DNA of 64,000 nt, from the NCBI GenBank assembly GCA_025558095.1, contig JAIVFI010000037.1, forward strand, positions 467,648 to 531,647, given 5' to 3'. Both the position numbers and the translations under genes were made by a program. Source of the stretch: Hyaloraphidium curvatum SAG 235-1 (lineage: Eukaryota > Fungi > Monoblepharomycota). The number at the start of each line of letters is the position of its first letter. Position 1 is the stretch's first letter. Positions 14,354 to 54,461 of this stretch are shown piece by piece. The notes beneath the pieces are model-generated. The model searched no databases. It was not told the origin of the DNA and saw nothing but the letters and a program-made list of their open reading frames with translations.

Positions 14354-15980
14354 ATGGACGCGTCTGCTGTCGATGCTCCGGCTTCCGGCCCCGCGACGCG
14401 GTTTTCGGCGGCGGAGTGGGCGGCGCTGTTTCCGTCGCCTGTTACGCCGGGTCCCGACGCTGCGGACGCCGACGTGCCCCACGAGCTGCGCGAGCTTGCG
14501 TTGCGGGTTGCGGCGGAGAGGGCGGTGGCACCGCCGCTCGACCTGGACGCCCTGCTCGCGGGGCTTGAAGGGGCGCCGGTCACGAGGCAGCTCGTGCGGG
14601 TCGGCGCGTTCCTGAAGCGCAGGGGGCTGCCGCACTACGGCCTCATGGAGCTCACGCACCAGGCGTTTGCACTGTTTTTCGTGCTGCTCGTGTGGATCGA
14701 GAACGACGGCCGGTTCGGCACGCGGCAGTTGGTTGTAGCGACGGTTGCCAGCTTCGTCCGCGTCGCGATCTGGGACGCGCGACTCATGACCGGACATTTC
14801 CTGCCGTCCGAGAAGGAGGTGTTCATGAAGCCCAGCGCGGCCGACTCGGGCTCGTCTGTGGACGGCAACGTCCTCGCGGGCCTGGTCCGCTACCGCGAAC
14901 TCGTGCAGGCCGGCGGCACGCTGCTCACGGAACATGTGCCGGGAGACCCCTTGTGCGCATGCCCCAAACCGGGCTGCACCGGGGGCCTCACTTGGGTCAC
15001 GTTTTTTTCCTACACAGCTTCCGCCGCCGTGCAAATTGCCTGCATGCTGACGTGGCCGGTCGTGCTGCGGGTCTGGACTCCGGCCGTCACCCTGGGCTCC
15101 GTTACGTGGTCGACGCCGTGGGCCGCCACGCTGGTTGTTCTGGGCATCGTCTTTATCTCGTGGCTGATGGTGGTTACGACCCTGATGCAGGTGGCAACGT
15201 ACGCGCGCAACGGTGCAGCCTTTGCGCTTGATACACGGTTGCGTCGCCGTGCCGCCCAACTATGCCTGGAGGACCTGCTGGAAAGGTTACGGGACGCCCT
15301 CGCCCGGCCTGATGGCACGTGGAAGCCGCGGGAAGCCGAGAGTGAGCCTTACATGGCGCTGCACGGTGCCCTAGTCACGACCTGGCGGCGCACCAAGGCC
15401 GGCTCGGACCCCAGCCGCGCCGTCATGTTGACGGGACTGCTCGCGGAAGTGGTGGCGGTTCTCATTTTCGTCGTGGGTTGCGAACCAGGACACCTCGGGA
15501 AGACGGACTCCTGATCCTCCGTTGCAGATCGGATCCTCGTGCATTCCCTCTCCCAACCTCGCCGGCGTCCTATACATCATTTTCACCCTGCTAGTTTTCG
15601 ACCTCTTGGTTTTGGCCGCCGCCAACACATCCCCCGACCGCATCGCCGCCCTGTTCCGCTCAGCCTCCCACTCGCTCCGCTCCATCGGCACCGCCGCTGC
15701 GGCCAGCGGCCGCACGGACCTCGCAGCCGCGGCTTCGTGGCACGACCGCTTCCTCTCCGGCTTCGCGGACGTCGATCCCTACCGCATCCGCGCGTTCGGA
15801 GCACCCGTCACTTTTGACCTCGTGCGAACCGTCGTGGCGACGCTGTTTACGCTTGGAGTGGGGCTGTGGAGCCTGCTTCGGGGCGCGGGTGTTGGGGTCA
15901 CAATTGGCATCGTATGCCCGGTGGGTGGGTGCTTGGCGGGCCGGACTGGAGTTGACCGATGCAGTCAGTGTCCCGCTTGA
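14354..15980 (+). CDS. 7-TM membrane protein, paralog 1 (candidate gustatory-receptor-like 7TM ion channel)
   Basis: Seven hydrophobic segments; intron 15473-15527. Shares FSAAEW..LFP, RQLVVAT, H-x3-D-x2-CxC-x4-C and AFGAPV..LGVGLWSLL..CP motifs with the genes at 37278 and 52998. The exact 3' end is uncertain. Confidence 0.75.
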
Positions 15981-16163
15981 TAGGGTTTCCGAGGATTGTC
16001 CGCGCGCTGGTGCAATGCTTCAAGGAGCGGAAGTTTGCGACAGATCTGGAAACTGCCCTTATTCGACGGCACTTGAACTCCCTCACACTACCTATTCCGG
16101 CCCCACTTAGCAATCCACAATCCAGCAGACTGCAGAGGTCCGGGTCATCTTCAGCATCCACCC

Positions 16164-17261
16164 TCACGGCTTGACCCCAATCACGACGTCCCTGTACAGC
16201 CCTGTCCCCTCGGCGTGCTTCCACTTGGCCGTCTCCCCCTCGTGCACCCTGAACCCCGCGGCCTCGACCATCGTGCGCACCCCAACGGCCGGCATGAACC
16301 CCGCCTCACGCACGACGAGCACGCCGCCCCTGTCCGTGGCGGCGAACAGCGCGGACAGCATGTCGGCGGCGACGGGGGGCGGGAGAAAGTCGAGCACGTT
16401 GCTCGCGTTGACGAGGCCGTACTTCTCGCCCTTCTCCGCGGCCAGCTTGGCGCAGTCGGTGAGTCCTGCGTCGGAGTAGTCGATCGGAGGCAGCTCGCCG
16501 GAGCGGAGCTTGTCGAGCGCCGCGTAGTAAGCGGGCCCGCAAGCGATCGGGGTGGGGGCGCCCAGCAGCGCGCGGAGCCAGTAGTCGTCGTCCAGGGTGC
16601 GACCCGCGGCGAGCTTGGTGGCGATGGAGTGGGCGATCCGCTCCCCGAACGCGCGGCGAACGATCTCCGGAACGGGTGTGCCCTTCCCGAAGTTCTCGGC
16701 CCACACCTTCTCGTACTTTTCCACGGCGCCCGGGGCGGCGAGAGCGGCGGCCGGATCGGGCAGGTTGGGGACGTCGAGCTCGGGGTGCTGCTCGCGAAAC
16801 ACGTCGGCCATGGCGAGGAATGCCGCGGTGCCGGCGCCGATCCCGCGGAGGCCCTTGTCGGCGATGGCGGCTGCGTAGCGGGCGGCGATGTCCTTGGCGG
16901 CGTCGGGCAGCGAGGCGTCCTTGGCAATGGCGGCGAGCATCGCCCCGCGGAGGCGCTTCTCCTCCTCCGTGGCAACCGGCCCGGCGTTGGAGAGCACTTT
17001 GGCGGCGGCGTCGGCCGACGGCGCCGACTTGACGGCGGCCAGATGCAGCCTGCAGAAGTGGTTCTGCAGCGCGCTAATGTCGACGAACGTGAGGCCCGCC
17101 AGCTCTCCGGCGCCCAGGAGGGCGAGCCCCGTGTCCCCGCCGCTCGAGACACACAGAACTTTGGAGCGCGGCGGGGCCAGGGCGAGCGCAGCGAGCTCGA
17201 CGGCGGCGTCCTCATAGACCTGCGAGAACATGAGTGGGGCGGCGGCGAAGTCGACGGGCAT
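16164..17261 (-). CDS. DUF3419 / BtaA-like SAM-dependent (3-amino-3-carboxypropyl)transferase-fold protein, copy 1
   Basis: MFSQVYED..VE...KVLCVSSGGD..L...VDIS.LQ N-terminal signature and SNVLDF; intronless. Confidence 0.8.
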   Translation of the reverse strand: MPVDFAAAPLMFSQVYEDAAVELAALALAPPRSKVLCVSSGGDTGLALLGAGELAGLTFVDISALQNHFCRLHLAAVKSAPSADAAAKVLSNAGPVATEEEKRLRGAMLAAIAKDASLPDAAKDIAARYAAAIADKGLRGIGAGTAAFLAMADVFREQHPELDVPNLPDPAAALAAPGAVEKYEKVWAENFGKGTPVPEIVRRAFGERIAHSIATKLAAGRTLDDDYWLRALLGAPTPIACGPAYYAALDKLRSGELPPIDYSDAGLTDCAKLAAEKGEKYGLVNASNVLDFLPPPVAADMLSALFAATDRGGVLVVREAGFMPAVGVRTMVEAAGFRVHEGETAKWKHAEGTGLYRDVVIGVKP

Positions 17262-18372
17262 TTTGGCGGCCGTTCGACGGGGAAATGGCGATGGTGGTCG
17301 CGTCGCGGATTGTTGAGCTGCCGGCACAGCCTCGAATTCGAATTGTTGCGGATCCTGCCCCCGGCGCTTACATCCCTCTCTGCACGGCAGCAACTGCAAG
17401 GCGGTTCTCTGTGGGCAGATGAGGGCACGACGTCGGCGGGAAGATCGATGGAGGCGGGGGCGATGGCGATGGCGACCGGAGGCAGAGGAGGGGGAAGTGG
17501 GCGCGCTTGGCCAACACCCCTCCCACACAATGATCCGCGGAGTACTACCGCACCGCTGGTGTTACCTCGTATGTACGATACCCGCCGAGCTACCGGGGGG
17601 GGGGGGGGGGGACAACGGGCCGCTGGTTCGCCGGAGACGGGACAAGCGGACGGGGCTGCGAGGCAGGTTCGGGGAGGAGATGGCGGGCCGCACACGGACG
17701 AGAGAAACGGGCGGTGACACCAATGTTGCCGAGGGGTCGTCGGACCCCGCAGGACGTGTTCTATGTTGGAGATTCAAGACGGGGCGCGGTCACCAAGCGG
17801 TTGTCCAAATGGGCGGAAGTCCGCCCGGCCATCGACGTGCGGACAATAGCTCTGGGCTCCCGACCGAGGATTGGGACACCAAATCGGTGGAATTCTGCCC
17901 TGGCACCGAGTGCGAATCCATAGCGACCCTTGCACCCTTACATGACGTCAACGTCCCCTGGTCCCATCCAAAGGGCGTCGGACGTCGGCGCCCGCCGCAC
18001 CGGTCACACGATCGCGGAGACGGGGAGCGGCGCCTAGACCGGGGACGGGCCACCGCCTCCGAACTCCGGTGTAGCGCTGATGAACCGTGCAGCATGTCCC
18101 GAAGATTCGTCAGAAGCGCAGCGGCTTGTGCTGGGGTATTGGAAAATGGGCTATGCAGGACCGCAAGGTGCAGGGTCGTGTAAACTACAAAAGCGAGGCG
18201 GTGGAGCGCGGTGGCATCGAGCCACATGTTCGCATCAGTACTCGTCTCGAGCGATACCGAGCCCTTTTGGCAAAGGGTCTGGGCCCGTCCCCAGGGTCGG
18301 GGCTCGCGGGTCGATTTCGAAAGAATTCCTCCGTACCACCAAATCTGTCTGTCACCCACCGAACCCGCAACG

Positions 18373-19473
18373 ATGGCCACCCTCGACTTCGCCGCCGCCC
18401 CGCTTATGTTCTCGCAGGTCTATGAGGACCCCGCCGTCGAGCTCGCCGGGCTCGCCCTGGCCCCGGCGAAGCCCAAGGTCCTTTGCGTGTCCAGCGGGGG
18501 AGACACCGGGTTCGCGCTGGCCGCCCAGGCGGACATCGCCGGCCTCACGTTCGTCGACATTGCCGGGCTGCAGAACCACTTCTGCAGGCTGCATCTGGCC
18601 GCCGTCAAGTGGGCGCCGTCGGCCGCCACCGCCGCCAAAGTGCTCTCCAACGCGGGGCCGGCCGCCACGGAGGAGGAGAAGCGCGTCGGCGGGGAGATGC
18701 TCGCCGCCATTGCCAAGGACACTTCGCTGCCCGAAGCCGCAAAGGGTATCGCGTCGCGGTACGCCGATGCCATCGCCGTGAAGGGCCTTCGCGGGATCGG
18801 CGCCGGCACCGCCACCTTCCTCGCCATGGTCGACCTGTTCCGCGAGCAGCACCCCGAGCTCGACGTCGCCAACCTGCCGGACCCCGCTTCTGCGCTCGCA
18901 ACCCGGGGCGCCAGGGAGAAGTTCGAAAAGGTGTGGGGCGACGAGTTCGGCAGGGGCTCCCCCGTCCCCGAACCGATCCGCCGCGCATTCGGGGAGTGCA
19001 TCGCCCGCTCAGTCGACACCAAGCTCGCCGCGGGGCGCACCCTGGACGATGACTACTGGCTCCGCGCCCTGCTGGCCGCCCCCGTTCCGATCACCTGCGG
19101 GCCCGCGTACTATTCGTCGCTCGACAAGATCCGCTCCGGCGAGCTGCCCCCGATCGACTACTCCGACGTCGGGCTGACCGAGTGCGCCAAGCTGGCCGCC
19201 GAAAGGGGCGAAAAGTACGGCCTCGTCAACGCGAGCAACGTGCCCGACTACATGCCGCCCGCTGCCGTCGCCGACATGCTTTCCGCGCTGTTCGCCGCCA
19301 CCGACACGGGTGGGGTCCTCGTCGTGCGCGAGGCAGGGTTCATGCCGGCGGTGGGGATGCGCAAGATGGTGGAGGCGGCCGGGTTCAGGGTGCACGAGGG
19401 GGAGACGAGTAGGTGGACGCAGGCCGAGGGGACTGGGCTGTACAGGGACGTTGTGATCGCTGTCAAACCGTGA
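18373..19473 (+). CDS. DUF3419 / BtaA-like protein, copy 2 (inverted duplicate)
   Basis: Collinear with and highly similar to the 16164-17261 protein over its full length; intronless. Confidence 0.8.
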   Translation: MATLDFAAAPLMFSQVYEDPAVELAGLALAPAKPKVLCVSSGGDTGFALAAQADIAGLTFVDIAGLQNHFCRLHLAAVKWAPSAATAAKVLSNAGPAATEEEKRVGGEMLAAIAKDTSLPEAAKGIASRYADAIAVKGLRGIGAGTATFLAMVDLFREQHPELDVANLPDPASALATRGAREKFEKVWGDEFGRGSPVPEPIRRAFGECIARSVDTKLAAGRTLDDDYWLRALLAAPVPITCGPAYYSSLDKIRSGELPPIDYSDVGLTECAKLAAERGEKYGLVNASNVPDYMPPAAVADMLSALFAATDTGGVLVVREAGFMPAVGMRKMVEAAGFRVHEGETSRWTQAEGTGLYRDVVIAVKP

Positions 19474-20284
19474 GGGAGGAGGAGGTTCCCGGGCGGGGCG
19501 TTTCTTGGAGAGCGAAGTTAGCGGCTATTTGTGTTTAGCAATTCCGTCTGTCTGTCTGGGCTAATGTACTCTTGCGTCCGGGGCCGTCGCTTGTCAATAA
19601 GACCGTTCCTCCTGTTTGATGATTGCGCCGTCAGCAAAGCCCGAGAATCACTGTTCTCCGTATCGCCGACCCGAGGTGGAAAGCCCACAGGTCAAAGCCT
19701 TCAAGGGCTCCCCTCCTGAAGACTTGAAGATCGGCAAGGCCTCGGCGCCAGCGGGTCCCATTTGTCCGGCGGACTGCCTGAGGGCCCTCTACATGACTAC
19801 TGCACTACGCCAGCCGCTTACGGCGGCTCTGGTGCGCGGTACGGAATCCATATTGACTCCGACGCTGGGTCAATTTTGCGTTGACGGCGGCGGCTCTGCT
19901 GGAGTTTCTTCGGACGGCCAGGACGTGGCATCGAAATCGCCACAAGGGGCATGCGCCACCGACGAGGTTCTAGTTGCGGATGCACTTACTCGACGCGCCA
20001 TTCGCCCCATCGCCCCCGGCCCGATTCCGCAGCCCTCACGACCACTGCACCATTCGGATCCTGCCGACCTCGATCAAGTACAGCCTCTGCCTCGCCGTGT
20101 CGTACGCCATGCCGTACAGGTTCAGGGTCTCGGTGTTGGTTGTACGAAGGCGGCAGTCCGACCTCAGCCTCACCAAAGACCTCCACCGATCGCCGGTCGT
20201 CCGTCTGCAGTCAAAGATCGCCAATGCAAGAAGCCTAACAACGCGTCATGACATTGGAATCCCGTGATCTGTGCACTGGCTGCT

Positions 20285-20922
20285 CTACCGAGCTCCTGTG
20301 CCGCCGTCCTTGGCCGTTTTGCTAGCTTGAACGCAGGTCTGCTTGTGCTGGGGCCACGCCAGCCTCTGGCAGGCCGCGCTGCAGTACGGCGTCTCCTTGC
20401 ATCTCGCGCACCGCCGCATCGTGCCCTTGGAAAAGCGCCCGCAGCCCATGCAGATCTCCACGCTGCCCCCGCGGCCCTCGGCGAACTCCACGGCCATGAG
20501 ATCCGTGCTTCCGTCCATTCCCTGCAGCATCCGGTCCCTTGCGTCCATCGCCTGCTCGACGGCAGCAACGCAGCGCTCCGATCCGCAGCACGGCCACACC
20601 CAGGGGACCCATTTAGGTCCCGGGCCCGCGATGGTGATCGCCGCCCGGCCGTCGCACCGGCCCCGCAGCCGAAGCAGAGGTACCCCGGCAGAGAGCCCGT
20701 TTCCATCCAGCGTGGCTCCGATTCCTCGAGCACCTGCAGGAAGAGCCGGTTGCGGAGCTCCCCGTGCGCGCCGCTCCACTCCCGCTCCGCGAACCGAGAG
20801 TCGAGCCCCTGGGGGTGCACGACGAACTTGGGGGGGTCGGCGGCGCTGCCGTGCTGGTAGATGGTGATGAAGACGGGGACGACGAGCGGCCCGCGGCCCA
20901 CGAGCCCCTCAAAGTCGGGCAT
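20285..20922 (-). CDS. MYND zinc-finger protein (one apparent 1-nt frameshift near 20645-20650)
   Basis: CMGC...CARCKETPYCSAACQRLAWPQHKQTC is a canonical MYND finger. The N-terminal frame (ATG 20922, CFGC) joins the PCCGSERC/MYND frame if one G is added to a GGG run. Confidence 0.75.
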
Positions 20923-21113
20923 CGCGCTCTGGGAGGGAAAGGTGACGTGTCGGTTTCAGGTTTGCCCAGGACAGCGATCACCCAACTCTCAACCTCAAAG
21001 CGAACCACGCGCTGCCATAAATCGCGCCAGGAAACTAAACGCAATGTAAACACTGTATTCCGAGAATATGGGCCTTGTCCCCGCAGACATAGATACCATC
21101 GACACGGCGCGGC

Positions 21114-23011
21114 TCAAGCCAGCACCGCGGCGGCCGCCCCCGCTCCCGCGGCCGCCGCCCACGCCCACCCCGCCTTCCTCCCCGTCGCCGCCCCGAACGG
21201 CGGCACGTTGGTCGTCGTCGCCGCCTGCGTCGTGAAGCTCGGCACCGGCCCGTCGGCGCCGTAGATCGTCCACCCCTGCGAGCTCGCGCACGCCTGCATC
21301 CCCGCGTTCCCGGCTCCCGCGGGGACCAGGCAGAAGCCCGTGTTGAGAGACTGCAGCTTCGTGGGGTCGTTGGGGGGAAATCGCCACAGCAGGTCCGCGG
21401 GGGCCTGGGACTGCCGCCGGTGGAGGGAGGGGCGGATCCGGCTGCCGTTGAGGCACGAGCCAGATGTGCACTCGTCATCGGGGCACGGAACAATTTTGGC
21501 GTCTGGAAGAGGTGGAGTGGGGTGAGAAGGATTGGATTGCGCCCCCGTGCCGGCAACACCCACCTGCCTGCCCCTGTGCGGCGGAAAGGCAACCCCTTCC
21601 CGTGATGTCCCTCAGGAGCAGCTCGTTGCAGCTCCCCGGGTCGCACGTGATGACGAACGGCTGCTCCGACCCCGTCGTCGAGCACCGGATCGCGTTGCAG
21701 TTGAGGTAGGCCGGCGCGGTGCTCCCCGTGCGGAACAGCACGGCCGTCTCGAGCGGCGGCACGGTGGTCACCGCCGTCGTCGTGCTGGTGGTCGCGGTGG
21801 GCGGCTCCGTGGTCCGCGAGCCGGTCTGCGAACCCGTCTGCGTCTCGGTCCGCGAGGTCGTCGTGCGCGTCGTGCTCGTGGCCACGGTCGTCGTGCTCGT
21901 CGTCGTCGTGCTGCAAGTCTGCCCCTGTCCCACCGGCCTGTTCTCCCACTTGCCGTTCTCGTCCTCGCACCGGATCTGCACGCTGTCGACCTGGATCCGG
22001 TAATTCGGGTTCACGGGCTGCGACCAGTCCGTTGGCCCGCCAGCCCACTCGGCCACACCCTGCGCGCCCTGGCCGCCGTCCCAGATGGTGAAGACGAACT
22101 TGGAACTCCGGTAGGGGAACTTGCCGGGGACGGAGGAGGCGAGGAGGGTGCGCTTGACGGAGCCGTCGAGCCACCTAGGGGACGTCAGCGGGGACGGCGG
22201 CAGGGCGCCGAGGGGAAGACGCACCACTCGATCTTCTGCGGCGTGCGGGCCACGCAGATGTTGTGGAAGTTCTCATAGGTGTTTGTCGTCGGGAAGAACT
22301 CCCCGTGGCTAAAGTCGAGATCGTTGATGGAAAAGTAGGTCGTCTGCATCTCCTCCAGATTCTTGCCCACGAACTCGACGTCGATCTCGTCGTCGGGATT
22401 CGCGCCGGGCGTGTAGGAGTCGATGATGCCGGCGCTGACGACGCCGCCTCCCCGGGCCGTCTTCATGGTCTGTGGGGGGCCGCAGTTGAGCCTCCAATCG
22501 ACCCGGAGGCGGCTTAAGAGAAGGACCCACAAAGCAAACGCTCCCATACTGCCTGTAATGGCCGATTGCGGTCCGGCAAAGGAGCTCCGGTCAGCAGGAT
22601 CCCCACGCCCGGTTCAAAGCCCACGCACCACCACCGGCTCCACGACACCGCGCTCTCCCTCCCGAACGGCCGCCCGAACTCGTTGAGGTACGGCGACTTG
22701 ACCAGGTTCATCTGCAGCACCTTCTGCGCGCCGCTGCCCAGCGGCGTGATGAAGGCCGGCGCCTGCGGATACTCGGTGATCCATTCCGCGCAGGCCGGGT
22801 TGCCGTTCCACTCGGTGACGTTCTTCAGCTCGCTGGAATCCTCGAACCGCGTCGAGTAGACGCCGACGCAGTTGCCCTGCGACGCGAACGGCGACTTTAT
22901 CGTCGAGGGGAGGTCGCGCGCCCGGGCGGGCACGGCGGCGGCAAGGAGCGCGAGCGCCGAGACGGCCGCCACCGCGGGCAGTCGCGCACGGGAGGACCGT
23001 GCGGAAGGCAT
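21114..23011 (-). CDS. Secreted GH16 of the Crh/Utr2 transglycosylase type, with Thr-rich linker, ricin-B-like domain and probable GPI tail
   Basis: Signal peptide; catalytic DEIDVEF; IWDGG..GVAEWAGGPTDW; TTTT linker; Cys/Trp beta-trefoil-like repeats; hydrophobic C-terminus; several introns. Confidence 0.85.
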
Positions 23012-23171
23012 CGCGGTGGCCGATGGCCGGAGCCGCGGTGGGGGGGACGGCCGCAACGGTAAGCGGGTTCGGGAGGCGCAGCGACGGCGCAGGGACTTCA
23101 ACTCTCGAGGGAACCCCAATCACGTTCAAGCGGCGAGAAAGCCTTGGATCGGCATCTATGGGCACTCCGAC

Positions 23172-37277: not shown

Positions 37278-38867
37278 CTACTCCAGGAGCCCCTTCGGGC
37301 ACGACGTCTGGATCGTCACCGTCACCCCGAACCCCTTGAGCACGCTCGCGAACCCAACGCCAAGGACCAGCACCGTCGATAGGTAGCTCCTCGCCACCGC
37401 AAAGTCCACGGGAAACCCGAAAAGCGTGGAGCGGTGCTGGTCCGCGCGGGCAAACAGCTCCAGCACCCCCCTTGCGTGTTCCAGCTCCGAGGTCAACGCC
37501 GCCCGCTCCGCCGGCTGCAAATGATGCGCCGACACGTCGCACCGCGCCAAGAGCATCCGCACGCGGGCGCCGGCGCGGGCGTGGATTCCCGACACGTCCG
37601 AGATCTGCGAATTGGCGGTGGACATGTTGAAGAGGTCCATGCCAAAGAGACCTATGTGTATGTAGGACGCGACGAAGAAGATGTTGGCAGGGAGGCAGTG
37701 GCCCCCGACGACGTCGATCACGGCGGCGGCGAGCAGGCTGAAGCCGCTGAAGACCGCGAGGCCGCTGCCGGCGTACAGTCGCGGGAGGCCGGAGCGCCAG
37801 ATCCGGACGAGGTTGCCGTGCAGCCGCGCGAGGCGCTCCAGGAGCTCGGCACGGGATCTCAAGCCGGCGACCTGGTCGCAGGCGGGGTCGAAGATGGCCG
37901 AGTGGTAGTGGTCCAGCAGCTCCTGCGCGACCAGCATCATGGCGCGGTGGTGGATGCGCCGGTTGAGGCGCAGTGCTCCGTAGTTGGGCGTGATCAGGAC
38001 TAGGCCGTTGATGATGATGAAGAAAGCTTGGGCGAAGACTGGTTGAAGGAGTTAGTGGATGTCAGGGTGGGGCCGAAGCGGATGACCGACTGTTGAAGAT
38101 TCCGATTATGCAGCTCCACCACGTCCCCCATGTCGTGGGCCCGAAGGTGAGGTACACGGTCCAGCTCGAGAAGATGGTGGTGGTCAGGAACCCGTAGAGG
38201 CCGCCGACGCAGAACTGCGCAAAGTGCCTCCGGCCCGCGACCTCGGGCAGCCCGCCTGCGCAGGTCTTGGCGGGGCACGGACACAGCCTGTCGCACGGGT
38301 CGTGGGCGAGGAGGATGCCGGGGTCGGCGCCGGCTCGGATTTCCGAGGCCAGCTGGTTCCACCGGGCCACGCCGGCGAACTCGTGGGAGTCGATGGTCGG
38401 TCCTTCGCGGAGATACGATGCGCTGTAGGATGCCTTGATTTGCGGGACGACCATAACCATGATGGAGTCGCAGACAGCAACCGTGATGAATGCGAGCGTA
38501 GCTGGGGGTAGGGGTGAGCCGGTGTTGTTCTTCCAGGAGCCTGACACCCACATGCGATGAGCTGCCTCGCCCCGAACATGCGGTAGCTCTCGTTGAATAT
38601 CCACAGCGGCAGCAGCATCAGCAGATGGCTGAACCCAAACAGCCCCGCGCGCAGCATGTACTGCGCCCCGGCGGGCTCGGCGAGGAACTGCGCGCGCACG
38701 GCCAGCCGCGCCGTTGGGGACGGCTCCAAGTACTCCAACAAGGACTTGCGGGTGAGCGGGTCCGCGGCGCGAGCGTCCGCGGCGGGGTCCGGGAGGGGCT
38801 CCTCGAGGGGGCGCTGCGGAGGGAGCGGGCCGGGGAAGATGGCGAGCCATTCGCGCGGGGTGAACAT
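37278..38867 (-). CDS. 7-TM membrane protein, paralog 2 (candidate GR-like 7TM ion channel)
   Basis: MFTPREWLAIFP, RQLIAST, HDPCDRLCPCPAKTC, TWGTWWS, LHGNLVRIW, GGHC, AN, LFGFPVDF..LGVGFASVL..SCP. Two GT-AG introns join three ORFs. Confidence 0.75.
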
Positions 38868-44632: not shown

Positions 44633-45007
44633 TCATGCGAGGACCACATCTACGACCGGCACCCCCGGCCCGCCAAACAGAACGAACCCCCCTGCGCCGT
44701 CTGCCATCCACGCCGAAGGGAGGTCCCAGTGGGCCACATGGGGCTGTTCCGTCCGGGGAGGCCGCGGCGAGGAGCGGCGGTCGGCGTACTCGTCCGCGGA
44801 GTAGGTGGGGTAAACCTCGACCTCGGGCGAGAAGCGCACCGACTTGCGGGTGCCGCTCGAGGCGTCCGATGCGGAGCGGCGGCGCGGCGCGGGGTCCGCG
44901 GGCGTGGGCGCGGGCGCGGGCGCAGCGCCGAGTTCGAGGAGGCACGGGAAGCAGGCGCCGTCCTCGACCGGCGAGTGCGGGCACGGCGGGGTGGGCATGG
45001 AGTCCAT
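44633..45007 (-). CDS. Small CxH-x7-CxxC protein with a PP1-docking motif, copy B
   Basis: PCPHSPVEDGACFPCLLE ... RKSVRFSPEVEVYPTYSADEYADRR. Confidence 0.65.
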   Translation of the reverse strand: MDSMPTPPCPHSPVEDGACFPCLLELGAAPAPAPTPADPAPRRRSASDASSGTRKSVRFSPEVEVYPTYSADEYADRRSSPRPPRTEQPHVAHWDLPSAWMADGAGGFVLFGGPGVPVVDVVLA

Positions 45008-45561
45008 TGCAGGTCCGGTGTTCCGGCAAGCTGTTGGTTCCGAGATTTGGTCGGCGGGCTCGCGGAGCCGCGGAACGGAGCAGTCCGTCCGTTCTCCGCC
45101 GGCCAGGTTCGGGTTGCGGGTCCAGGCCCTAGATTCCCGCCACACGCCGACGCTCCGCCATCCCGCCGGAGCACATCACGCAACATACGGCACCAAATTC
45201 ATCAAACGATCGCCCCGACTTGGTTTTCGGGGCGGTCGGTGCCGCTCAGGCGCGGCGTCGTGCGACAGCGGCGGCGCAGAGGGCGTCCCAAGCGGCCGGC
45301 GGACAAGGCCGGCGGACGAACCACGGCCGGATCGATCCGGGAGGTTCCCGACCGGAAACCAGCTCACAGCACAGCGTCGGACCCTGGGATGAGATCGAAC
45401 AGGTTGCAGGGCCCGCGAGACGACGCGGTGATGGGCACGGCGTTGTGCTTCCGGGCCTCTTCGCGGCGGATATGACCGAGTTGATTGGCGAGGGCTTAAC
45501 CTCCGGTGTGGTCGCAAGTGCAATATGGTATCCAAACAAATTGACAAAAGTACAAAAGGTA

Positions 45562-47617
45562 TCATCCTCGTGCCCCATTTCTCGCCCCTTCCTGGCCCTC
45601 GGCGATCCCGGTTACCCCGATCTCCTGTCCCGGCCCCGCCCGCCTCGCCCCACCCGAGAGCAGCACGTCCTGGAAGTACCTCGCCCCGTGGCCGTCCTCC
45701 GCCGGCGCGTCCTCGAGCAGCACCGAATCCCCCTCCTCGAGCTCCTCCAGACCGCCGAGGTCCGCGCGCCCCGGCCGGATGCCGGCGGCGGCCATCTCGG
45801 CGCCGAACGCCCGCGCGACCTTTCGCGCTGCGAAATTCCGGAGGGATCAGACCGGCGAGCGGCACATCGGGCGCCCGTGCACCCACGCGAAAGCCCGTAT
45901 ATCCTCCCCAGCCGGTCCAGCGCGTGCCCCATCACCCGCACGCCCCACTCCAACTCTCCCCTCCTCTTGCCCCCTTCGCCCTCCCCCTCCTTCGGCCTGC
46001 CCTCTGCCCGCAGCTCCTCCAGCATAATCTTCCCCACGACGAAGCACGGGGCCATCAGGAGGTGGTGCCCCCATTCCACCTGCGGGTCCGCGGCACGAGG
46101 CCGGCCAGCAGCCGCGCGTGGCGAAGACATCGCGCGGCTGCGGCCGATCGGAACCCGCCGTCACGGAGCACCTCGATCGGGTGGGTGAACCCGAACAGGA
46201 CCAGCTGCAGCGCCGCGAGCGCGTGCGCCCGCGAGGGAAAGTACCGATGCGAGAGCGCCAGCAACGCGCCGGGGTCCCCCGCGGCGAGCGGGATCCCGAT
46301 CTCCGGGGGCAACGCGGCCATCGCGCCGTCCGCCGCAGCGGCGTACTGCGCCACCGCATGCTGCTGCTTGGCCGAGAGGTGCAGGCCGCCCTCCATGCCG
46401 CGGGCGACGGCGATCCGCACGTGGCGGAGGTAGTGCGCGAGGAGAAAGGCGGAGAGGTGGGAGCAGCCCGTGCCGGCGATCCCCGCGGCGAGGGTGCGCA
46501 CGGTGCCGGCGATGCCGGGCCAGTCGGAGGCGCCGAAGGGCACGCTGGGCTCGCCGTCGGCGTCCACCCGCGAGCGTTGCACGAGGTAGGCGGAGGCGAC
46601 ATCGGGGTCGTCGAAGATCGAGTCGTGGCAGGGGAGGGGGTATACGTTGCGGTGGAAGTAATGTCCAAAAGTCGGCCGTTTCGCGTGGTAGGCTGCGCCG
46701 AGGTCGAACGCGGCGACGAGGGCGCGGAGCCGGCACACCATCTCGCGGCGCACCCAGGAATCCGCGTCGTCCGGGAACACGGGCGGCAGCGACGCGTAGA
46801 GCTCGTCACACAGGATCGCGCACCGCCTCAGGAGGGGAAGCATCCTCCCCGGCACCCCGGCGACGAACAGCGCCTCGAGGATCAGCGCCGACGCCTGCGC
46901 GGCCTCGAGATCCGGCGCGCCCTGCGCGATGAGCAGGTCGCGGGCACGGTTGGTGCAGAACCTCGCGTAGGCGAACCGGTCCGGCTCGGGGATGTCGTGC
47001 AGGTAGATGGTCCCGACGGCGGCGGCGGCGTAGACGAGCGCGAGGGGCCGGCGGCCGCCGTACACGGGGTGGCCGACGCGGAAGGCGCGCTGGAACGTCG
47101 GCTGGTGCACGACTGGGATCAGCGGGTGGAAGCGCGAGAAGAAGCACGAGATGGCGGGGAAGAGCAGGTCGGCGGCCGGGACGGGGCCGACCTCGGCGAG
47201 GGGATATGGCGGCGGCTCGAACAGCGCGCCGTCGGAGAGGTCCGACAGGTCACGGGCCCACTGCGTCCAGTGCAGCCCGAAGCCCGCGGGCAGTGTCTCG
47301 GTGCCCAATAAATCGAGCAGCGGGTGCCGCTTCCGCAGGCCGGCGACCGTGCCCGGCTCCGACTTGGGCGAGTTTGTCGCGGTGTCGTCGTCGGATTCCT
47401 CGCGCGAGGCGTGGCGCCGGGCCGCGGCGGCGGGGGGCAGCGAGCCCGTCCGCCACAGCGGAGCCTCGGCCGGGCGTGGCGGCGCCGGCGGGGCGGCACT
47501 CTCGCCATCCCCGCGATCAGCAGCCACCCGCCCGGTCAGCTGCAGGGCCGCGGCCGCCCGCACGAGGGCGCCCCAGTCGGCCCCCTCCGATCCCTCGTCG
47601 TCCCCTGCCGGCCCCAT
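45562..47617 (-). CDS. Fungal-specific transcription factor (MHR / Fungal_trans domain); no Zn2Cys6 cluster seen; apparent 1-nt frameshift near 46094
   Basis: AISCFFSRFHPLIPVVHQPTF, LVYAAAAVG, LEAAQA.L, WVRREM..RL, LPCHDSIF. The C-terminal ADPQVEWGHHLL..F frame needs one extra G. Confidence 0.75.
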
Positions 47618-48313
47618 CGGGCCCCTCGCAGCACACGGCCTCAGGCTCAGCGTCGACACCGCCGACGTCCCATTGCCCGGGGAAGGCGGGGCAGCTGGGT
47701 CCCGCCGGGTTCAGGGCTCCGCCGAATGGGGGTATGGCGGCCGGGCGGGGTCGCCGATCGCGATGACGGAACTGGGGATAGGGGATCGGAACTGCAGGGG
47801 CATGCGCATCCTGCTGCGGACACTATGGGCGGAAATCGTCGGCAGCAATGCGCCTCTGCGACATCCGCGGCATGGGAGGCGTCCTCGCGTCCCCGTGGCC
47901 CTGTCCGACTCCCACGGTCACGTCGCACACGCCCGAGGATGGGAAAGCAGCACAGAGGCGCGCGCTAGAGAGCGTCCCTAGCATCTGGCATCGGCTGAGC
48001 ATGGATGCTCCGGGCATCCCCGAGGCCTCCGCCCCGACACCGTCTCCCACGATGCCCCCCGGCCGGCGCGGCCGCCGCCCACCACCGCGAGTGCCGAGTG
48101 GCCGCCATCCCGGCCGCGCAATCTGCTGTGTGCAGAGAGCTATTCCCGTGCTTTGCTGTGCCGATCATGCACCTTCGGAGTGTCCGCCATGCCGCCATAA
48201 ACGAGCGGCCGACGGGTGCCTCTCGCGCCATCGCACTACAACACCGCCGCGACCGCTCCGCCGTCCGCCTTCCTGCTACCGCCCCCTAAACCCCCGCGAC
48301 CGCGTAACGTTCC

Positions 48314-49800
48314 ATGTCCGTCTCGCCCGCGACCGCGTCGGCGCCTCCGCCGCCCGCGGCGAACCGGTTCGTCGACGCCGACGGCCTCGAGTGGGCCCCG
48401 GTCCCGGTGATCGACCTCTCGCGCGTGACGGCGGGCGCGGCGTCCCCGGCGGAGGAGCGCGCGATCTCGAAGCAGCTCGTGGACGCGGCACGGACCGAGG
48501 GGTTCTTTGTGGTGACGGGCCACGGGGTGCCGCGGGAGGAGGTGCGGGAGATGTACCGGCTCGTGGGTGGCGGCCGTTTGGTGGCCCGATGGCGGCCTTG
48601 CCTTACCTCGCTCCCTCCTCTTCATCGCGCTCGCCGCTCCAGAACGAGGAATGGGCCGCCATGCCGAGGGGTATGCCGTGTCCCGCGGCTCCCTCGTCCG
48701 GCCGACGTCCCGATCGCGCCCCGCCCCTTCCCCCGCAGACGAGAAGCTCAGGTTCAAGGCCAACCCCGCCGAAAACTACTGGGGCTACGTTCCCAACGGG
48801 ATGAAGCAGGGCTGGCGCGGCCGCAGCGAGATGTACAACTGGCCGCCCTTCTCCGCCGCGCACGCCGGCGACGCGCACCTCTGGAAGGACAGGGCGGACA
48901 GGGCACGGTTTTTGGAGGGATTCTCGAGGAGGGCACACGAGCTGGGGAACAGGATCCTGGAGCTCGTGGCGCTGGAGCTCGAGATTCCCGAGGCGGAAGG
49001 GGGAGGAGGTGGTTCAGGGAGAGGCACCGCTACGACAGGGCGAACCGCTGCATGATGCGGCTCATGTGGGTCCCTGCGCGGTGTCTAAACGGACGCCTTC
49101 GGACCGCCCATCCTCGGCCCCTTCGCGGCACGGCAGGCGCTACCACAAGCTCAAGGACTACGGCGACGAGATCCCCGGCCACACCGACTTCAACAGCCTC
49201 ACCATGCTCTTTTCGCCGAGCATCGCCGCGCTGCAGGTGCTCTGCCGGGACAACCGGTGGCGCTTCGTCAAGCCGCTCGAGGACGCGGTGATCTGCAACC
49301 GAGTGGGTCGCGCGGGCATCCCGCGCACGGCACGGGGGGCTGACGCCCGACGTCCCCGCAGCACGCTGCAGTTCTGGACAGACGGCTACCTCAAGTCGAC
49401 GCAGCACCGCGTGGTCAGCGCGCGCTTCGAGCACGAGCGGGACATCGAGCGGCCCAACGTCATCGTGGGTCGCTGCCAGGCGGCTCCCTCGACTACAGTT
49501 GCTGATCCCTCCGCGACGCATAGTACTTCCTCTACGCCAACGACGACGTCCCGCTCCTCCCCCTCCCGAGCCCTTACGTCCCCAAGAAGCCCCCGAAGGA
49601 GGGCAAGGTACTCACTGCCGGTACGTCTCTTCCCCCTCCCCGGCCGCGCTCGCGCTGACGCCGCCCGCGAAGGGGAATGGGACCGCCTCCGCGTCGCGCA
49701 CAGCTTCAGCCAGACGGCGACGGACCACGGGGCCAGCCCGTTCCAGGACGCGATCGACGGGGCGGCGGGGCAGAGCGGGAGGGTGAGGGCGGCGCTGTGA
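48314..49800 (+). CDS. 2-oxoglutarate/Fe(II) dioxygenase (DIOX_N + 2OG-FeII_Oxy) with two apparent small deletions
   Basis: VPVIDLS, GFFVVTGHGV, GHTDFNSLTMLF, ALQV, LKSTQHRVV. Frameshift at the G5 run 48999-49003 and a defective N(IA)D junction near 49300. Confidence 0.8.
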
Positions 49801-49939
49801 GGCGCGCTCGGCGCAGGTCAAGATGGGCGGTGTAGTCGCATCGTTCGAAAGATGTTTCCTAGAAGATCAATCTGGATGTTCAGGATCGTGTCTTGGAAGA
49901 GCTGCGCCAGTCCCGGCTTCCCCGTCCCGAAGAGTCCGA

Positions 49940-50641
49940 TCACACACCGCTCGCATCCCTTCCGCCCCGCATGTGCGTCAGGCAGTAAGCAACATCGTCG
50001 CCAGCGTGCACCAGCTGGCTCCTGATCACGCTCCCCGCGCAGCCCCCGGCCGCGCAGCGTCGCACCCGGAGCCCGATCATCCCCGGCAGCCTGTACGGCC
50101 CGCAGGAGCGGCTCCGCCGGCCGGGGTATCCGAAGGTGGCGGTCTTTCCGCAGCCGTCATGCTCGCACCCGGGGCGCCTGTACTTGCGGCGGGATGCCCG
50201 CACCACGATCTGGACTTTGCGGGTCGGGGCGTCCTCGTCCTCGGGGAGCGACCTGCGTTTCTCCGAGGGTGCGGGACGACGTGCCGGACGCGGTCGAAGC
50301 TTGCGCGACGATGGGTCGGCGGTGGAGCGCTCGCGCGATGTCGTCGGCGACTGGAGCTCGGCTGCACCGGCAGAGGAGCTGGTGTGCGCGGGGCCGGGCC
50401 CATCCGAAATCGCGGACATAGTTTCGCGTCCTGCAGATAGGCACTTTGACACCGCCGGCTCGGAGTCCGGAAGAGGGCCGTCGTGCAGCTGGAGCTCTTC
50501 CCGGTGGTCGACAGGCGGCGGCAGCAGATAGGGGGCGTGTCGGACCAGGAGCTCGTCCGCAAGCCGCAGCACGTCCTCGATCTCCGAGTGCAGAAGTTCG
50601 TGGGGGCCAGTGATCGTATCGGTACTTGCCCTGGACCCCAT
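49940..50641 (-). CDS. EsV-1-7-like cysteine-repeat protein, copy 1
   Basis: CEHDGCGKTATFGYPGRRSRSCGPYRLPGM, then CAAGGC...YCLTH. Confidence 0.7.
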   Translation of the reverse strand: MGSRASTDTITGPHELLHSEIEDVLRLADELLVRHAPYLLPPPVDHREELQLHDGPLPDSEPAVSKCLSAGRETMSAISDGPGPAHTSSSAGAAELQSPTTSRERSTADPSSRKLRPRPARRPAPSEKRRSLPEDEDAPTRKVQIVVRASRRKYRRPGCEHDGCGKTATFGYPGRRSRSCGPYRLPGMIGLRVRRCAAGGCAGSVIRSQLVHAGDDVAYCLTHMRGGRDASGV

Positions 50642-50872
50642 TGTGGATCCGGCGGAGTGATGTTGCGACTGGTGACTGGGCGGTAGACTGAACGCCACGT
50701 GTCGATCCATTCACTTCCCCGCTTGCGCGACGATGGAACGAACATCCCCGCTTAAGCGGCGATCGGAAGGACATGTCGCCTGCCGCAATCTACTGATGTA
50801 GTTGATACTACCCGACCGAGAATCCAAGAAGCAAAACGTCTCCTCCTCCTACCCTCCGGCGATCCCGATCGA

Positions 50873-52045
50873 TCACTCGTCCCTCGCGGCCCCACGGCCC
50901 CGCACGTGCCCCAAGCAGTACGCCTGGTCGTCGTCGGAATGCGCCAGCTGGCTCCTGATCACGTAGCCGCTGCACCCCGCCGCCGCGCACCGCCGCACGC
51001 GGTGCCCCATCATGCCCGGCAGCATGTGCGTCCAGCAGAATCTGCTGCGCCTCCCCGCAGCGCCGTAGTTGGCCGACTTCTCGCACCCCTCGTGCTCGCA
51101 CCCGTGGCGCATGTACACCCGGCCGGTGCTCGAGACGGTGATCTGGCGCTTGGGGGCGGGCTCGTCGCCGCCCTCGGCGTACGTCGCGCGCTTCCTCTTC
51201 GGCGGCCCGGCCTTCGCCTTCTTCAGCTTCTGCAGTGCCTTAATGGCCGCTTCTGCTTGCGGCACTGCGTCGGAGAGGAAGAGATCGTCCGAATGCCCGG
51301 ATTCGGAACTGCCCGGGCTCTCCAGATCCGAGCCGCCATCCGAAGCGCTGGCCTCCGACTCGGAAGATTGCCCCCACGTCCGCTGCGCCCTCCCGGCTTC
51401 GCCCTTCCGGGCACGCCGCGCGCGCTTGTCCGCGTTGCGGTGGTTCACCATCCCCTCGAGCCTGTGCGCGGCGCACAGGCGGTATGCCCTCCTGGAAGGG
51501 TAGTCGAAGCTCGGGGAGGTGCGGCAGCCGGGGTGCGCGCAGAGGGAGCGGAAGCGGGGTCCGTCGAGGCCTGGCTCGGGCGGTGTGCCCGGGGATGCGC
51601 GGGGGATGGGCTCCGGAGACGGGGAGAGATACGACGATTCCGACGATGAGTCCGACTCGACGTCCACAGTGCGAGCCGGGGTGTCGCGGGCCTGCGGCGG
51701 CTTCGATGGCCGCGCGCCGAGGCCGGAAAGCATCGCGGTCACTGTGTCGCGGAGCGGCGCCCAAGCGGGAACGGGAACCGTCGGGGTCTCACGGACGGTG
51801 GCAGGGCCCGTCGCAATAGGGCGTTGCTCCTCCGGTGCAATGTCGACCACCGTCGTCGCCGAGCGCGACAGCACGGGGTGGTGCCGTGCGGAGAGCGGTG
51901 ACAGAGCCTCGGGCGACGGGCGGGCCAGCAGCTCGTCCGCCCGCCGCAGCACCTCGTCGACTTCAGCTTCATCGAATATCGACGCGCCCAAGGGAGCTGC
52001 CCCGATGAGCCCCATGGGGAGCCCGGCGGGGACTGTGGAGGCCAT
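50873..52045 (-). CDS. EsV-1-7-like cysteine-repeat protein, copy 2
   Basis: CAHPGCRTSPSFDYP..LCAAHRLEGMVN; CEHEGCEKSANYGAAG..FCWTHMLPGM; CAAAGC..YCLGH; NLS-like PPKRKR. Confidence 0.75.
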   Translation of the reverse strand: MASTVPAGLPMGLIGAAPLGASIFDEAEVDEVLRRADELLARPSPEALSPLSARHHPVLSRSATTVVDIAPEEQRPIATGPATVRETPTVPVPAWAPLRDTVTAMLSGLGARPSKPPQARDTPARTVDVESDSSSESSYLSPSPEPIPRASPGTPPEPGLDGPRFRSLCAHPGCRTSPSFDYPSRRAYRLCAAHRLEGMVNHRNADKRARRARKGEAGRAQRTWGQSSESEASASDGGSDLESPGSSESGHSDDLFLSDAVPQAEAAIKALQKLKKAKAGPPKRKRATYAEGGDEPAPKRQITVSSTGRVYMRHGCEHEGCEKSANYGAAGRRSRFCWTHMLPGMMGHRVRRCAAAGCSGYVIRSQLAHSDDDQAYCLGHVRGRGAARDE

Positions 52046-52251
52046 GTTGGGGTGACGGGGCGGTCGCACGGAAAGCCACGTGGCCCTCCGTCGGTATCAT
52101 TTTCATCGCGTACCTGGTCGCTGTTCAGTCTCTCGCAATGAAAACCGGCTCTTTGAAAGGCGTAGTCCCTATATACGAGCCTGGGAGCCGCTAGCCGTGC
52201 CGCAGGTTGATCCGATCCTCGCCGGTGCCGCCGCACCCCCTTCGCGTCTCC

Positions 52252-52752
52252 TCAATCTCCCCTTTCAGTCCTCGAGTCCACGAGCTCCACTAATGCAGCC
52301 GCGTGTTCCGCCATGAGCCACTGTAGGCCGTCCGCCAGTGCCCTCGCCTGCGCCTCCAGCGCCGACGCCTGTTCCTTGGCCCGAAGCCGGGTGCGGCGCA
52401 TCGATTCCGTGGCCAGCTGCCTTTTGCGCTGCTTCTTGGAAAGCTTTTGCTGCTTAGGGTTAGGTTGCTGCTGGAAGCTCCGCAGGGGCCGGGGGCGGGG
52501 CGCGACGCTTCTGCGGAGCGCTCTTCTTGGCGGGGTGCGAAGGAGACGGCCCGCCGGTCCCAAGAGGCTGCGCGCTTCGACGGCCGGCACGTCGATGAAG
52601 GAGGGCAATTCCGGCTGCGAGTGTCCGATGGCAGGAAGAGCGGCCGGGGGAGGGAACTGCATGGCGGGCGCCTTGGCGTAGTAGGCGGGAGCGGCGGCTC
52701 GGGAAGGAACAGGGGACCCGGAGAGGACGCTGGAGGCCGCATTGGTAGGCAT
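52252..52752 (-). CDS. Small bZIP-like transcription factor
   Basis: Basic region KKQRKRQLATESMRRTRLRAK followed by a heptad zipper (LEAQARALADGLQWL). Confidence 0.6.
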   Translation of the reverse strand: MPTNAASSVLSGSPVPSRAAAPAYYAKAPAMQFPPPAALPAIGHSQPELPSFIDVPAVEARSLLGPAGRLLRTPPRRALRRSVAPRPRPLRSFQQQPNPKQQKLSKKQRKRQLATESMRRTRLRAKEQASALEAQARALADGLQWLMAEHAAALVELVDSRTERGD

Positions 52753-52997
52753 CGTTGGGGAAGACGAGGGAGTGGTGTGCGGGGGACGAGTGTCGCGGAG
52801 GTCGGCCGGGGCCACGTGGCGGTTTGGCGGGAAGCCACCCGCCACCGTGCAGTCGCTTCCCCAACGAGAAGGAATCGCGAGCCCCCGTGCCCATCTTTGA
52901 CTACAAAGCGGAACAGGCAACGGAGTGAACTGCATTTGACCCGGCAAACTACAGTAAATGTCTGTTCCTTCGCTCCTCGGATCGGAATCGCGCGGCC

Positions 52998-54461
52998 TCA
53001 CCCCGGACACGCGATCTCCATGGTGACAAACACCCCCCCGGCCCGCAGGACCGAGTAGAGCCCGACCAGCAGTGTGGCAGCCGTGATCACGAGCCCGCGC
53101 ACCGTTGCCCCGGTGATCGGGAACCCCAGGAACGCGGCGCGGTTCTCCTCCGCCTCGAGCATCGTCGCCATCTCCTACCTGTGCGCGTCCAGGACCGTGA
53201 GCACCGCCGCGCGGTCCGCGGCGGGGGCGGGGGAGCTGGCTAACCTGCGCGCGGCGGCGCGGAGCCGCGCGCGGGCGAGGCGCACCGTGCGCGCGAGGAC
53301 GGTGACCTCGCGGTTGGCGTAGGCGACGGTGACGAGGTGGTGCAGGACGTTGAGGAGGGCGAGGACTACGGCGAGGGAGGTGAAGGTGATGCAGGAGCCG
53401 ACGGCGAGGTTGCCGACAATGGCAGGGAGCTCGAAGAGCATGCCGACGGCGAACCACCGGATGAAGGCGTTCGACGTGGCCATGGAGTGCTTCCACATGA
53501 GGGAGAAGCGCGCGTGGAGCTCGCTGTAGTCGTCCCCGTTCGGGAGTTTCGCCGCCGGGTCCGGGCCCGCGTCGCCGCGCTGCAGGTCGGCGGCCACGCG
53601 CTCGCAAGCATCTACGGCAGAGCCCAGGAGAAGTTGCAACGCCCTATTGTGCAGCCTCGTCTGAAGGGTCAGGGTCGGCGGGTTGGTCGCCGTATCCTCG
53701 AGACCCTTGAAGAGGTGAGCGGCTGCGACGAGGGTCACGCTGGTCGCGACAAATGCGGCACACAGGAACGCGCTCCAAGCATGCGACCAAGTGTCAGATG
53801 CGAGGGTGTAGAAGGCGGTGTATGACATGCCGAAGCACCACCGCACGACCAGCAGGACGAACGGCGTCGCAACGCGCAGCGCTGCGGCAAGGTCCGCACC
53901 GGAGCCCAGCAGCGGCGCGGCACACCCTGGCAGGGGGCACGGGCAGAAGGGATCGCCCGCGATGTGCTCCAGGAGGCGAGAAGGGGCGGCGGCTTGTAAC
54001 GCCTCCAGCTCTCTGTAGCGAATGATCCCGGCGGCGCCGCCGAAGTCACCTGGCGAGTCCGCTGCTGCAGCGGGCCGCGTGCCCAGAGCGCCGGGCACTA
54101 CGAGGGCGTAGTGAACGGGCAGCAGCAGCAGCCCGCCGGCCCGGAACACGGTGGCGACGACCAACTGGCGCAGCTGAAACAGCGAGCCGAACCCGAACGC
54201 CCACGCCGGCGCATACAGCGCGGCCATTGACGTATTCCACAGCGTGTATACGACGAAAAACGTGCCGCGAGGGGGTACCGTCCGCCAAAACGCGTAGAGG
54301 CGGGCCTGAAAGCGCAGGAACGGGGGGAGGAGCGCGGCCGCCGCGGCGAGCCCCGAGTGGGTCAGCGGCTCCGGGTCCGCGGCCCCGCCCAGCGCTGCGC
54401 CGTATCGCGGGAAGAGAGCCGCGTACTCGGCCGCAGAGAACCCCAGGAGCTCGTTGCCCAT
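52998..54461 (-). pseudogene. 7-TM membrane protein, paralog 3, interrupted by an in-frame TAG at 53175-53177
   Basis: All family motifs are present. After the TAG the same frame continues EMATMLEAEENRAAFLGFPITGATVRGLVITAATLLVGLYSVLRAGGVFVTMEIACPG*, which aligns with TM7 of the paralogs. Confidence 0.75.

Follow-up and report, generated by a model that had tools for sequence, protein, structure and literature searches.

A large family of putative seven-transmembrane channel-like proteins in the fungus Hyaloraphidium curvatum

Does a unicellular fungus carry a receptor repertoire built like that of insects? The question is raised by three genes, here called A, B and C, that lie scattered over a 64,000-nucleotide stretch of the Hyaloraphidium curvatum SAG 235-1 genome (referred to below as the window, C37:467648-531647, taken from an assembly of 31.9 Mb in 55 contigs with a GC content of ~68%). 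A preliminary description of the window, made from the letters alone, had read them as very divergent paralogs of a single family with the architecture of insect receptors of the gustatory (GR) and odorant (OR) kinds. On the evidence presented here, we consider it probable that the three genes belong to a family of ~350-450 genes specific to the H. curvatum lineage. The encoded proteins, of ~500 residues, would share with insect ORs and GRs the fold of seven-transmembrane ion channels (7TMICs) and may act as ligand-gated chemoreceptor channels.

Three divergent paralogs and their predicted fold

Searches were run with single exons or with the database proteins P0001, P0046 and P0005; joined models of genes A, B and C served for translation, alignment, hydropathy and motif coordinates. 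The gene models and the main shared motifs are listed below in window positions, with transmembrane segments (TM) numbered from the N-terminus.

14354-15472 and 15528-15980, plus strand: gene A, 523 residues, one intron.
14354-15472, plus strand: gene A exon 1, residues 1-373, with the N-terminal motif and TM1-TM5; its translation equals residues 37-409 of P0001; donor GTGGGT at 15473.
15473-15527, plus strand: gene A intron, 55 nt, GTGGGT..CAG, in the short outer TM5-TM6 loop; junction as in annotated P0001.
15528-15980, plus strand: gene A exon 2, residues 374-523 and stop, with TM6, TM7a, the hairpin, TM7b and the C-terminal Cys.
38867-38552, 38501-38091 and 38038-37278, minus strand: gene B, 495 residues, three exons.
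38552-38867, minus strand: gene B exon 1, with Met, the FTPREWLAIFP motif and TM1; donor GTGGGT.
38091-38501, minus strand: gene B exon 2, with TM2, the His/Cys3 loop, TM3 and the start of TM4; donor GTCGGT, branch-like CTAAC, acceptor CAG; agrees with P0046.
37278-38038, minus strand: gene B exon 3, from the end of TM4 through TM7b and stop; junction as in P0046; model score (predicted local distance difference test, pLDDT) 92.4.
52998-54461, minus strand: gene C, 487 codons in a single frame with one TAG within it; transcribed.
14402-14434 (A, plus strand), 38832-38864 (B, minus strand) and 54408-54440 (C, minus strand): N-terminal motif FSxxEWxxLFP, predicted cytosolic, located by regular expression.
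14933-14977 (A, plus strand), 38260-38304 (B, minus strand) and 53922-53966 (C, minus strand): H-x3-D-x2-C-x-C-x4-C in the predicted cytosolic TM2-TM3 loop, candidate zinc site.
15798-15920 (A, plus strand), 37296-37418 (B, minus strand) and 53004-53126 (C, minus strand, 3' of the TAG): Gly hairpin, TM7b (candidate pore helix) and C-terminal Cys-Pro.

The product of gene A is identical to the NCBI/JGI protein P0001 from residue 37 of the latter onward; the annotated start of P0001 lies 36 codons upstream of the Met that is consensus in the family (window 14246-14353). P0046 is an exact substring of the gene B product, and both gene B splice junctions therefore agree. It starts 70 residues late relative to gene B (window 38657-38867), so that the annotated protein is without the N-terminal motif of the family. 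The window holds three paralogs, a search of its six-frame translation with a hidden Markov model (HMM) of the family having revealed no fourth locus. The three genes matched this HMM with E-values of 1e-24 to 1e-107, but had themselves helped to build it; against independent paralogs elsewhere in the genome, gene A gave E-values of 1e-34 to 1e-173, so that chance is no explanation for the likeness. Pairwise identities are 30% for A/B, 34% for A/C and 24% for B/C, in line with the strong divergence first reported. The ordered series of motifs that had been proposed to unite the genes was also recovered: nine of the ten motifs were found by regular expression in A, B and C in the same order, and the tenth, a Cys between TM5 and TM6, was found by regular expression in A and B and by alignment in C.

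Structures were predicted with AlphaFold2 (AF2) on alignments of paralogs. The model of gene A reached a pLDDT of 89.6 and a predicted template-modelling score (pTM) of 0.88, and that of P0046 (gene B), computed on a 112-sequence alignment, 92.4 and 0.89. Hydropathy and AF2 helices bear out the seven hydrophobic segments claimed for each gene; in gene A they correspond to residues 95-115 (TM1), 126-146 (TM2), 214-238 (TM3), 258-278 (TM4), 356-376 (TM5), 384-404 (TM6) and 472-495 (TM7b). Gene B has the same layout, and the order of elements is the same in both models. A short loop connects TM1 to TM2; after them come a long, well-ordered, non-helical loop with the His/Cys3 motif, TM3 and a TM4 that runs on into a cytosolic helix. 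Then come a cytosolic extension ahead of TM5, an outer loop of 7 residues and TM6 with its own cytosolic extension of ~28 residues. The models end with a short non-hydrophobic TM7a, a small β-hairpin with a conserved Gly, the hydrophobic TM7b and a short strand pairing with the TM5-6 loop; the split TM7 with a Gly hairpin, anticipated from the sequence, is present in both. TM4, TM5 and TM6 are predicted to extend into the cytosol and to pack there with TM7a, which lies outside the membrane, as an anchor-like four-helix bundle.

Topology was assessed by the positive-inside rule, counting Lys and Arg within 15 residues of the TM ends in 39 full-length members. We counted 11.8 such residues per 101 on the side of the N-terminus and loops 2-3, 4-5 and 6-7, versus 2.0 per 48 on the side of loops 1-2, 3-4 and 5-6 and the C-terminus. 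This asymmetry predicts an N-terminus inside (N-in), a C-terminus outside and long cytosolic loops, the inverse of G-protein-coupled receptors (GPCRs), and together with hydropathy and the AF2 helices it upholds, as a prediction, the N-in seven-TM topology of the preliminary description. Median loop lengths over the 39 members were 10 residues for loop 1-2, 71 for 2-3 (range 56-106), 19 for 3-4, 76 for 4-5, 7 for 5-6 and 66 for 6-7, with a C-terminal tail of 12, which reproduces the alternation of short (1-2, 3-4, 5-6) and long (2-3, 4-5, 6-7) loops seen in the three genes. Full-length members count 465-551 residues compared to ~350-500 for 7TMICs, slightly above that range because of an N-terminal extension and the long TM2-3 loop.

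Comparison of the models with known structures pointed to the same superfamily. The only Foldseek matches of model A with a probability of at least 0.9 were insect GR/OR chains, as were 11 of the 12 matches of model B at about 0.9 or above, the twelfth (0.89) being a partial match to a syntaxin. The best E-value was 2e-3, and template-modelling scores (TM-scores, normalised by target) were mostly 0.34-0.45 for GR/OR chains versus ~0.1-0.2 for most other entries; transporters and respiratory subunits scored about 0.1. Insect OR/GR/Orco channels were the sole whole-chain matches of the two independent models. No GPCR figured among the structural matches of either model, and with the N-in charge bias neither GPCR trait, an extracellular N-terminus or GPCR helix packing, is predicted for the family. 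A shape search of the ESM Atlas retrieved unnamed eukaryotic clusters (TM-scores 0.51/0.61 and 0.49/0.59) and a 7tm_7/Trehalose_recp sugar-receptor cluster (0.41/0.50). The suspected match to the GR/OR fold is borne out by Foldseek, VIA-align and the Atlas search on the AF2 models, with no transporter or GPCR matching better. Judged on these models, the proteins show the structural and topological features by which the field recognises the 7TMIC superfamily, and we regard the assignment of their fold to this superfamily as very likely.

Some of the structural matches were viral. The top shape match of model A (0.51/0.61) is an Atlas cluster in which most of the few members with a phylum label are Nucleocytoviricota, and a comparison of model B with the viral structures of BFVD retrieved uncharacterised proteins of Edafosvirus (A0A3G4ZRZ0, ~440 aa), Catovirus (A0A1V0SCD1, ~440 aa) and Yasminevirus (A0A5K0UB49, 577 aa) with Foldseek probabilities of 0.9-1.0. 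As far as the models go, giant viruses may encode 7TMIC-like proteins.

The residues conserved in the family were then mapped onto this layout. Mean conservation peaked in TM7b (0.68); the outer loop between TM5 and TM6 came next (0.58), then the hairpin (0.55), and TM1-6 scored 0.33-0.40. TM7b contains conserved T478, T481 and G485 and a consensus Ser at 488 (gene A numbering), spaced for one face of a helix; this stripe may form a pore-lining or a tightly packed face. No variation was seen among 112 sequences at the His and the three Cys of the TM2-3 loop, at the Cys of the TM5-6 loop or at an Asn that follows TM6; at least 90% of them keep the C-terminal Cys, and the N-terminal FSxxEWxxLFP motif is conserved family-wide. 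The His/Cys3 motif would be cytosolic because of the predicted N-in topology; in both models its loop reaches a pLDDT of 94-98, with 95-97 in gene A, and has no regular secondary structure, and we infer that it may be a structural zinc knuckle. On the outer side, the Cys of the TM5-6 loop and that of the C-terminal Cys-Pro could form a disulfide clamping the C-terminus after the putative pore helix. Such a bridge had been suggested before, and the models are consistent with it: their only long-range strand pair is formed by the segment that holds the TM5-6 Cys and the one immediately preceding the C-terminal Cys.

Size, spread and selection of the family

The occurrence of three members within 64 kb had been taken as a sign of a large family genome-wide. 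Compared with its own genome, the gene A protein gave 734 first-look candidates; 78 of these were scored and yielded 79 matches with E-values of 1e-22 to 1e-274. From 50 partly overlapping loci we recovered 36 intact, intronless, full-length open reading frames (ORFs) of 465-551 aa, and most of the remaining loci match as two exon pieces. A profile made from a 42-row family alignment was searched against 1.84 billion representative proteins (50% clustering), of which 468 matched at E<=1e-3, 418 at E<=1e-10 and 300 at E<=1e-30. All 19 matches with a readable source name came from H. curvatum, carried DFJ74DRAFT locus tags and were single-member clusters. At the DNA level, a 33-place back-translation of D-x2-C-x-C-x4-C matched the genome 402 times, versus 51 times for the reversed pattern used as control. 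A few of the 402 matches are an unrelated repeat, a TAG-containing 33-mer found in identical form at C1:1447054, C2:415788 and C7:695826 and in near-identical form at C2:357778. From the profile-match and DNA motif counts the family is estimated at roughly 350-450 genes in H. curvatum, which confirms the expectation of a large family.

Family members are scattered over most contigs and in places form local clusters. Tight pairs or triplets of members are found on contigs C12, C22, C28, C7 and C9, and a partial inverted copy adjoins an intact member on C27 (~56-58 kb); local duplication therefore contributes to the expansion. Two metagenome scans, with a subfamily motif and with the TM7b motif, found no relatives, which is weak negative evidence, and three word-indexed protein searches were uninformative on taxonomic range because they returned only a handful of H. 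curvatum paralogs.

Among the 36 ORFs, median pairwise identity was 29% and the minimum 18%. The ratio of nonsynonymous to synonymous divergence (dN/dS) was 0.20-0.48 in the 12 closest pairs, values that are approximate because dS was ~1 or more in most of them. They suggest that purifying selection on the family is relaxed yet present. DNA similarity between close paralogs stops at the ends of the coding sequence (CDS), which makes a mobile element an unlikely vehicle, and we rejected a mobile-element origin on this ground.

One paralog outside the window departs from the common layout. P0153 (835 aa, on a 558-kb contig, 59% identical to gene A) has a zf-MYND domain (PF01753) fused to it in the annotation; the fusion may be real, or two gene models may have been merged.

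Gene C, its in-frame stop and its neighbours

Gene C had been described as the third paralog. Its paralogy stands, as all ten motifs are present, but it is not an intact gene of two exons: the frame is interrupted by an in-frame TAG and not by an intron.

53175-53177, minus strand: in-frame TAG of gene C, just before TM7a; in an ungapped alignment the same column holds sense codons in A and B.

Transcripts were examined in one public RNA run, a transcriptome assembly available as contigs. Two of these, at 52911-53257 and 53371-54491, cover gene C, with depth in every bin between. The annotated protein P0005 cuts out positions 53175-53285 as an in-frame 111-nt GT..AG intron that holds the TAG. 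The contig at 52911-53257 crosses the TAG and 83 nt of this intron with zero differing letters and zero joints, and no splice joint was reported anywhere in gene C in the RNA contigs. We therefore rejected the annotated intron as unsupported, although contigs could miss a rare spliced form. Because the contig runs through unchanged, the TAG is real and present in RNA. The product of gene C would end before TM7a, and the gene is most likely a young transcribed pseudogene, with readthrough as a possible alternative.

The contigs of the same run skip two short introns of a neighbouring gene (56448-56512 and 56960-57017); the ends of the first are reported as GG..CA, probably through an offset of the cut. 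Several contigs begin with adapter sequence near gene boundaries, and at least one intergenic stretch is uncovered. The neighbouring gene at 55766-57153 (minus strand) has the deepest RNA contig in the part of the window compared with this run, with a depth of 315 compared to ~30 for gene C. A 403-aa ORF next to gene C (window 54537-55906, minus strand) is also transcribed, as a contig at 54537-55760 with a depth similar to that of gene C.

Relation to known channels and competing explanations

The family most resembles insect OR, GR and Orco proteins (7tm_6, 7tm_7; PDB 8V02, 7LIC, 8JM9, 8VC1, 8Z9Z). Both have seven TMs with a predicted N-in topology, long cytosolic and short outer loops, an anchor bundle made of the TM4-6 extensions and TM7a, and a split TM7 whose TM7b is conserved while TM1-6 are variable; both form very large, divergent repertoires under relaxed purifying selection. 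The H. curvatum family differs in its fungal host, in that its tetramers and ligand gating are putative, in lacking detectable sequence similarity and the TYhhhhhQF motif, in ~60-90 extra N-terminal residues with a conserved motif of their own, and in a TM2-3 loop of 56-106 aa with an invariant His/Cys3 and a conserved outer Cys pair. In fungi, a sequence screen in 2020 had retained as 7TMIC candidates single genes of two Spizellomyces species, SpunGRL1 and SpalGRL1 (Benton et al. 2020, PMC7746228), and a 2023 preprint lists Chytridiomycota and Blastocladiomycota as 7TMIC-bearing fungi (bioRxiv 10.1101/2023.08.30.555482). Like the family described here, these chytrid gustatory-receptor-like proteins (GRLs) are candidate 7TMICs of early-diverging fungi with the same predicted topology; unlike it, they are single-copy and were found by similarity to animal GRLs, a similarity that the hundreds of H. 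curvatum copies do not show (this comparison is by description only). No report of this family, or of any large fungal 7TMIC expansion, was found in the literature that we searched.

Further relatives were suggested by a protein language model, whose neighbours we treat as a lead and not as a test. For A and B they comprised unnamed eukaryotic clusters (echinoderm, arthropod, nematode, ciliate), DUF3537, 7tm_7 chemosensory receptors, GUR-5 and nematode SRR, and all the named ones are 7TMIC families except one TMEM39 cluster. The nearest named family was plant DUF3537 (PF12056), with a score of 0.91-0.93 and 187-197 of 256 features shared. DUF3537 belongs to the 7TMIC superfamily, but the H. 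curvatum proteins have no HMM match to PF12056 and number in the hundreds, compared to 4-12 members in plant DUF3537 families (PMC7746228). These neighbours are Class-A families and not PHTF; the long TM2-3 loop is a Class-B-like trait. PHTFs, again compared by description only, form a deeply conserved single clade across eukaryotes with a long N-terminal region (Benton & Himmel 2023, PMC9998090; Himmel et al. 2023 preprint). PHTF-like Class-B proteins have been reported from Chytridiomycota and Blastocladiomycota. The H. curvatum family shares their long intracellular TM2-3 loop and differs from PHTF in being hyper-expanded and fast-evolving and in its Class-A neighbours.

The subunits would assemble through the anchor bundle, probably as tetramers. 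The conserved Thr/Thr/Gly/Ser stripe of TM7b would line a central cation pore, the variable TM1-6 bundle would provide a different ligand pocket in each paralog, and the repertoire as a whole would constitute an array of ligand-gated chemoreceptor channels. A four-copy complex prediction with residues 279-511 returned a score of 0.01, which we counted neither for nor against assembly. We see this ligand-gated receptor-channel mechanism as quite possible, though somewhat short of probable.

Several observations weigh against our interpretation. None of 42 members matched Pfam 7tm_6, 7tm_7, Trehalose_recp, DUF3537 or any relevant family at E<=10, Pfam scans of the exons likewise gave no relevant match, and PDB chains of the 7TMIC superfamily gave no match to the family profile at the same threshold. 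The TYhhhhhQF motif of GR TM7 is absent, the consensus of TM7b being R-x4-T-x2-T-x2-VGLWS-x-LRG-x-GV. Because this motif and sequence similarity were both looked for and neither was found, the proteins should not be filed as GRs. Both AF2 models rest on alignments of paralogs from one genome only, and the RNA evidence is limited to gene C. Channel and receptor function are putative. Moreover, H. curvatum is described as a non-flagellated organism, so that a chemotactic use of these proteins is not obvious.

Three other explanations were considered. The proteins could have a true 7TMIC fold and yet not be chemoreceptors. They might instead be channels, either constitutive or under internal regulation, or might scaffold internal membranes, a situation suspected for PHTF in the endoplasmic reticulum, with an expansion driven for example by recognition of self, viruses or parasites. 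In favour of this, H. curvatum reportedly lacks motility, the fold is also found in giant-virus proteins, and the invariant cytosolic His/Cys3 motif suggests intracellular regulation. The long TM2-3 loop likewise resembles that of PHTF-like Class-B 7TMICs (bioRxiv 10.1101/2023.08.30.555482). But paralogs that number in the hundreds, hypervariable in TM1-6 and conserved in TM7b, are the pattern of a receptor repertoire and not of housekeeping channels, and the language-model neighbours are Class-A receptor families and not PHTF; we judge this alternative unlikely. A second possibility is that the likeness to ORs and GRs is convergent or a modelling artefact, and that the family is an unrelated set of seven-helix proteins with a long cytosolic helical bundle. 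The missing sequence-level link and the single-genome alignments would fit this, as would the modest quality of the superpositions (TM-scores 0.3-0.45, root-mean-square deviation 5-6 Å). However, Foldseek, VIA-align, the Atlas shape search and a language model that uses sequence only converge on one superfamily, the structural matches are colinear across all seven helices, and independent agreement comes from the topology, from the asymmetry of the loops, from the split TM7 and from the pattern of conservation; we consider this second explanation rather improbable. Finally, a decaying or selfish amplified sequence without cellular function, such as a pseudogene swarm or mobile-element cargo, might be thought of from the in-frame TAG of gene C and the dispersal of copies over most contigs, but is already largely refuted and very improbable in view of the 36 intact ORFs from 50 loci, the dN/dS of 0.2-0.5, the functional residues invariant in 112 members and the end of close-paralog homology at CDS borders.

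We thus favour membership of the three genes in a family of chemoreceptor-like 7TMICs. A bolder proposal, which we advance with considerable doubt, is that a unicellular fungus described as non-flagellated independently evolved a ~400-gene 7TMIC receptor repertoire of paralog-specific ligand-gated channels, in which a cytosolic zinc-knuckle module couples the intracellular state to gating; no such module is described in the 7TMIC literature that we searched. The invariant His/Cys3 motif and the outer Cys pair offer testable regulation sites for this channel class, and the hundreds of natural variants, intronless in most of the recovered cases, provide material for expression, structure determination and ligand screening. 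This touches on the open question whether non-animal 7TMICs are ion channels at all, and the diversity within the family may help to bridge the twilight-zone gap between 7TMIC classes. One may also ask what such a number of receptors would sense in a cell that is planktonic and reportedly non-motile. If the bolder proposal is correct, the family would provide the first large array of chemoreceptor channels outside animals, and ~400 members in a culturable fungus would mean that explosive receptor-like diversification of the 7TMIC fold is not an animal invention.

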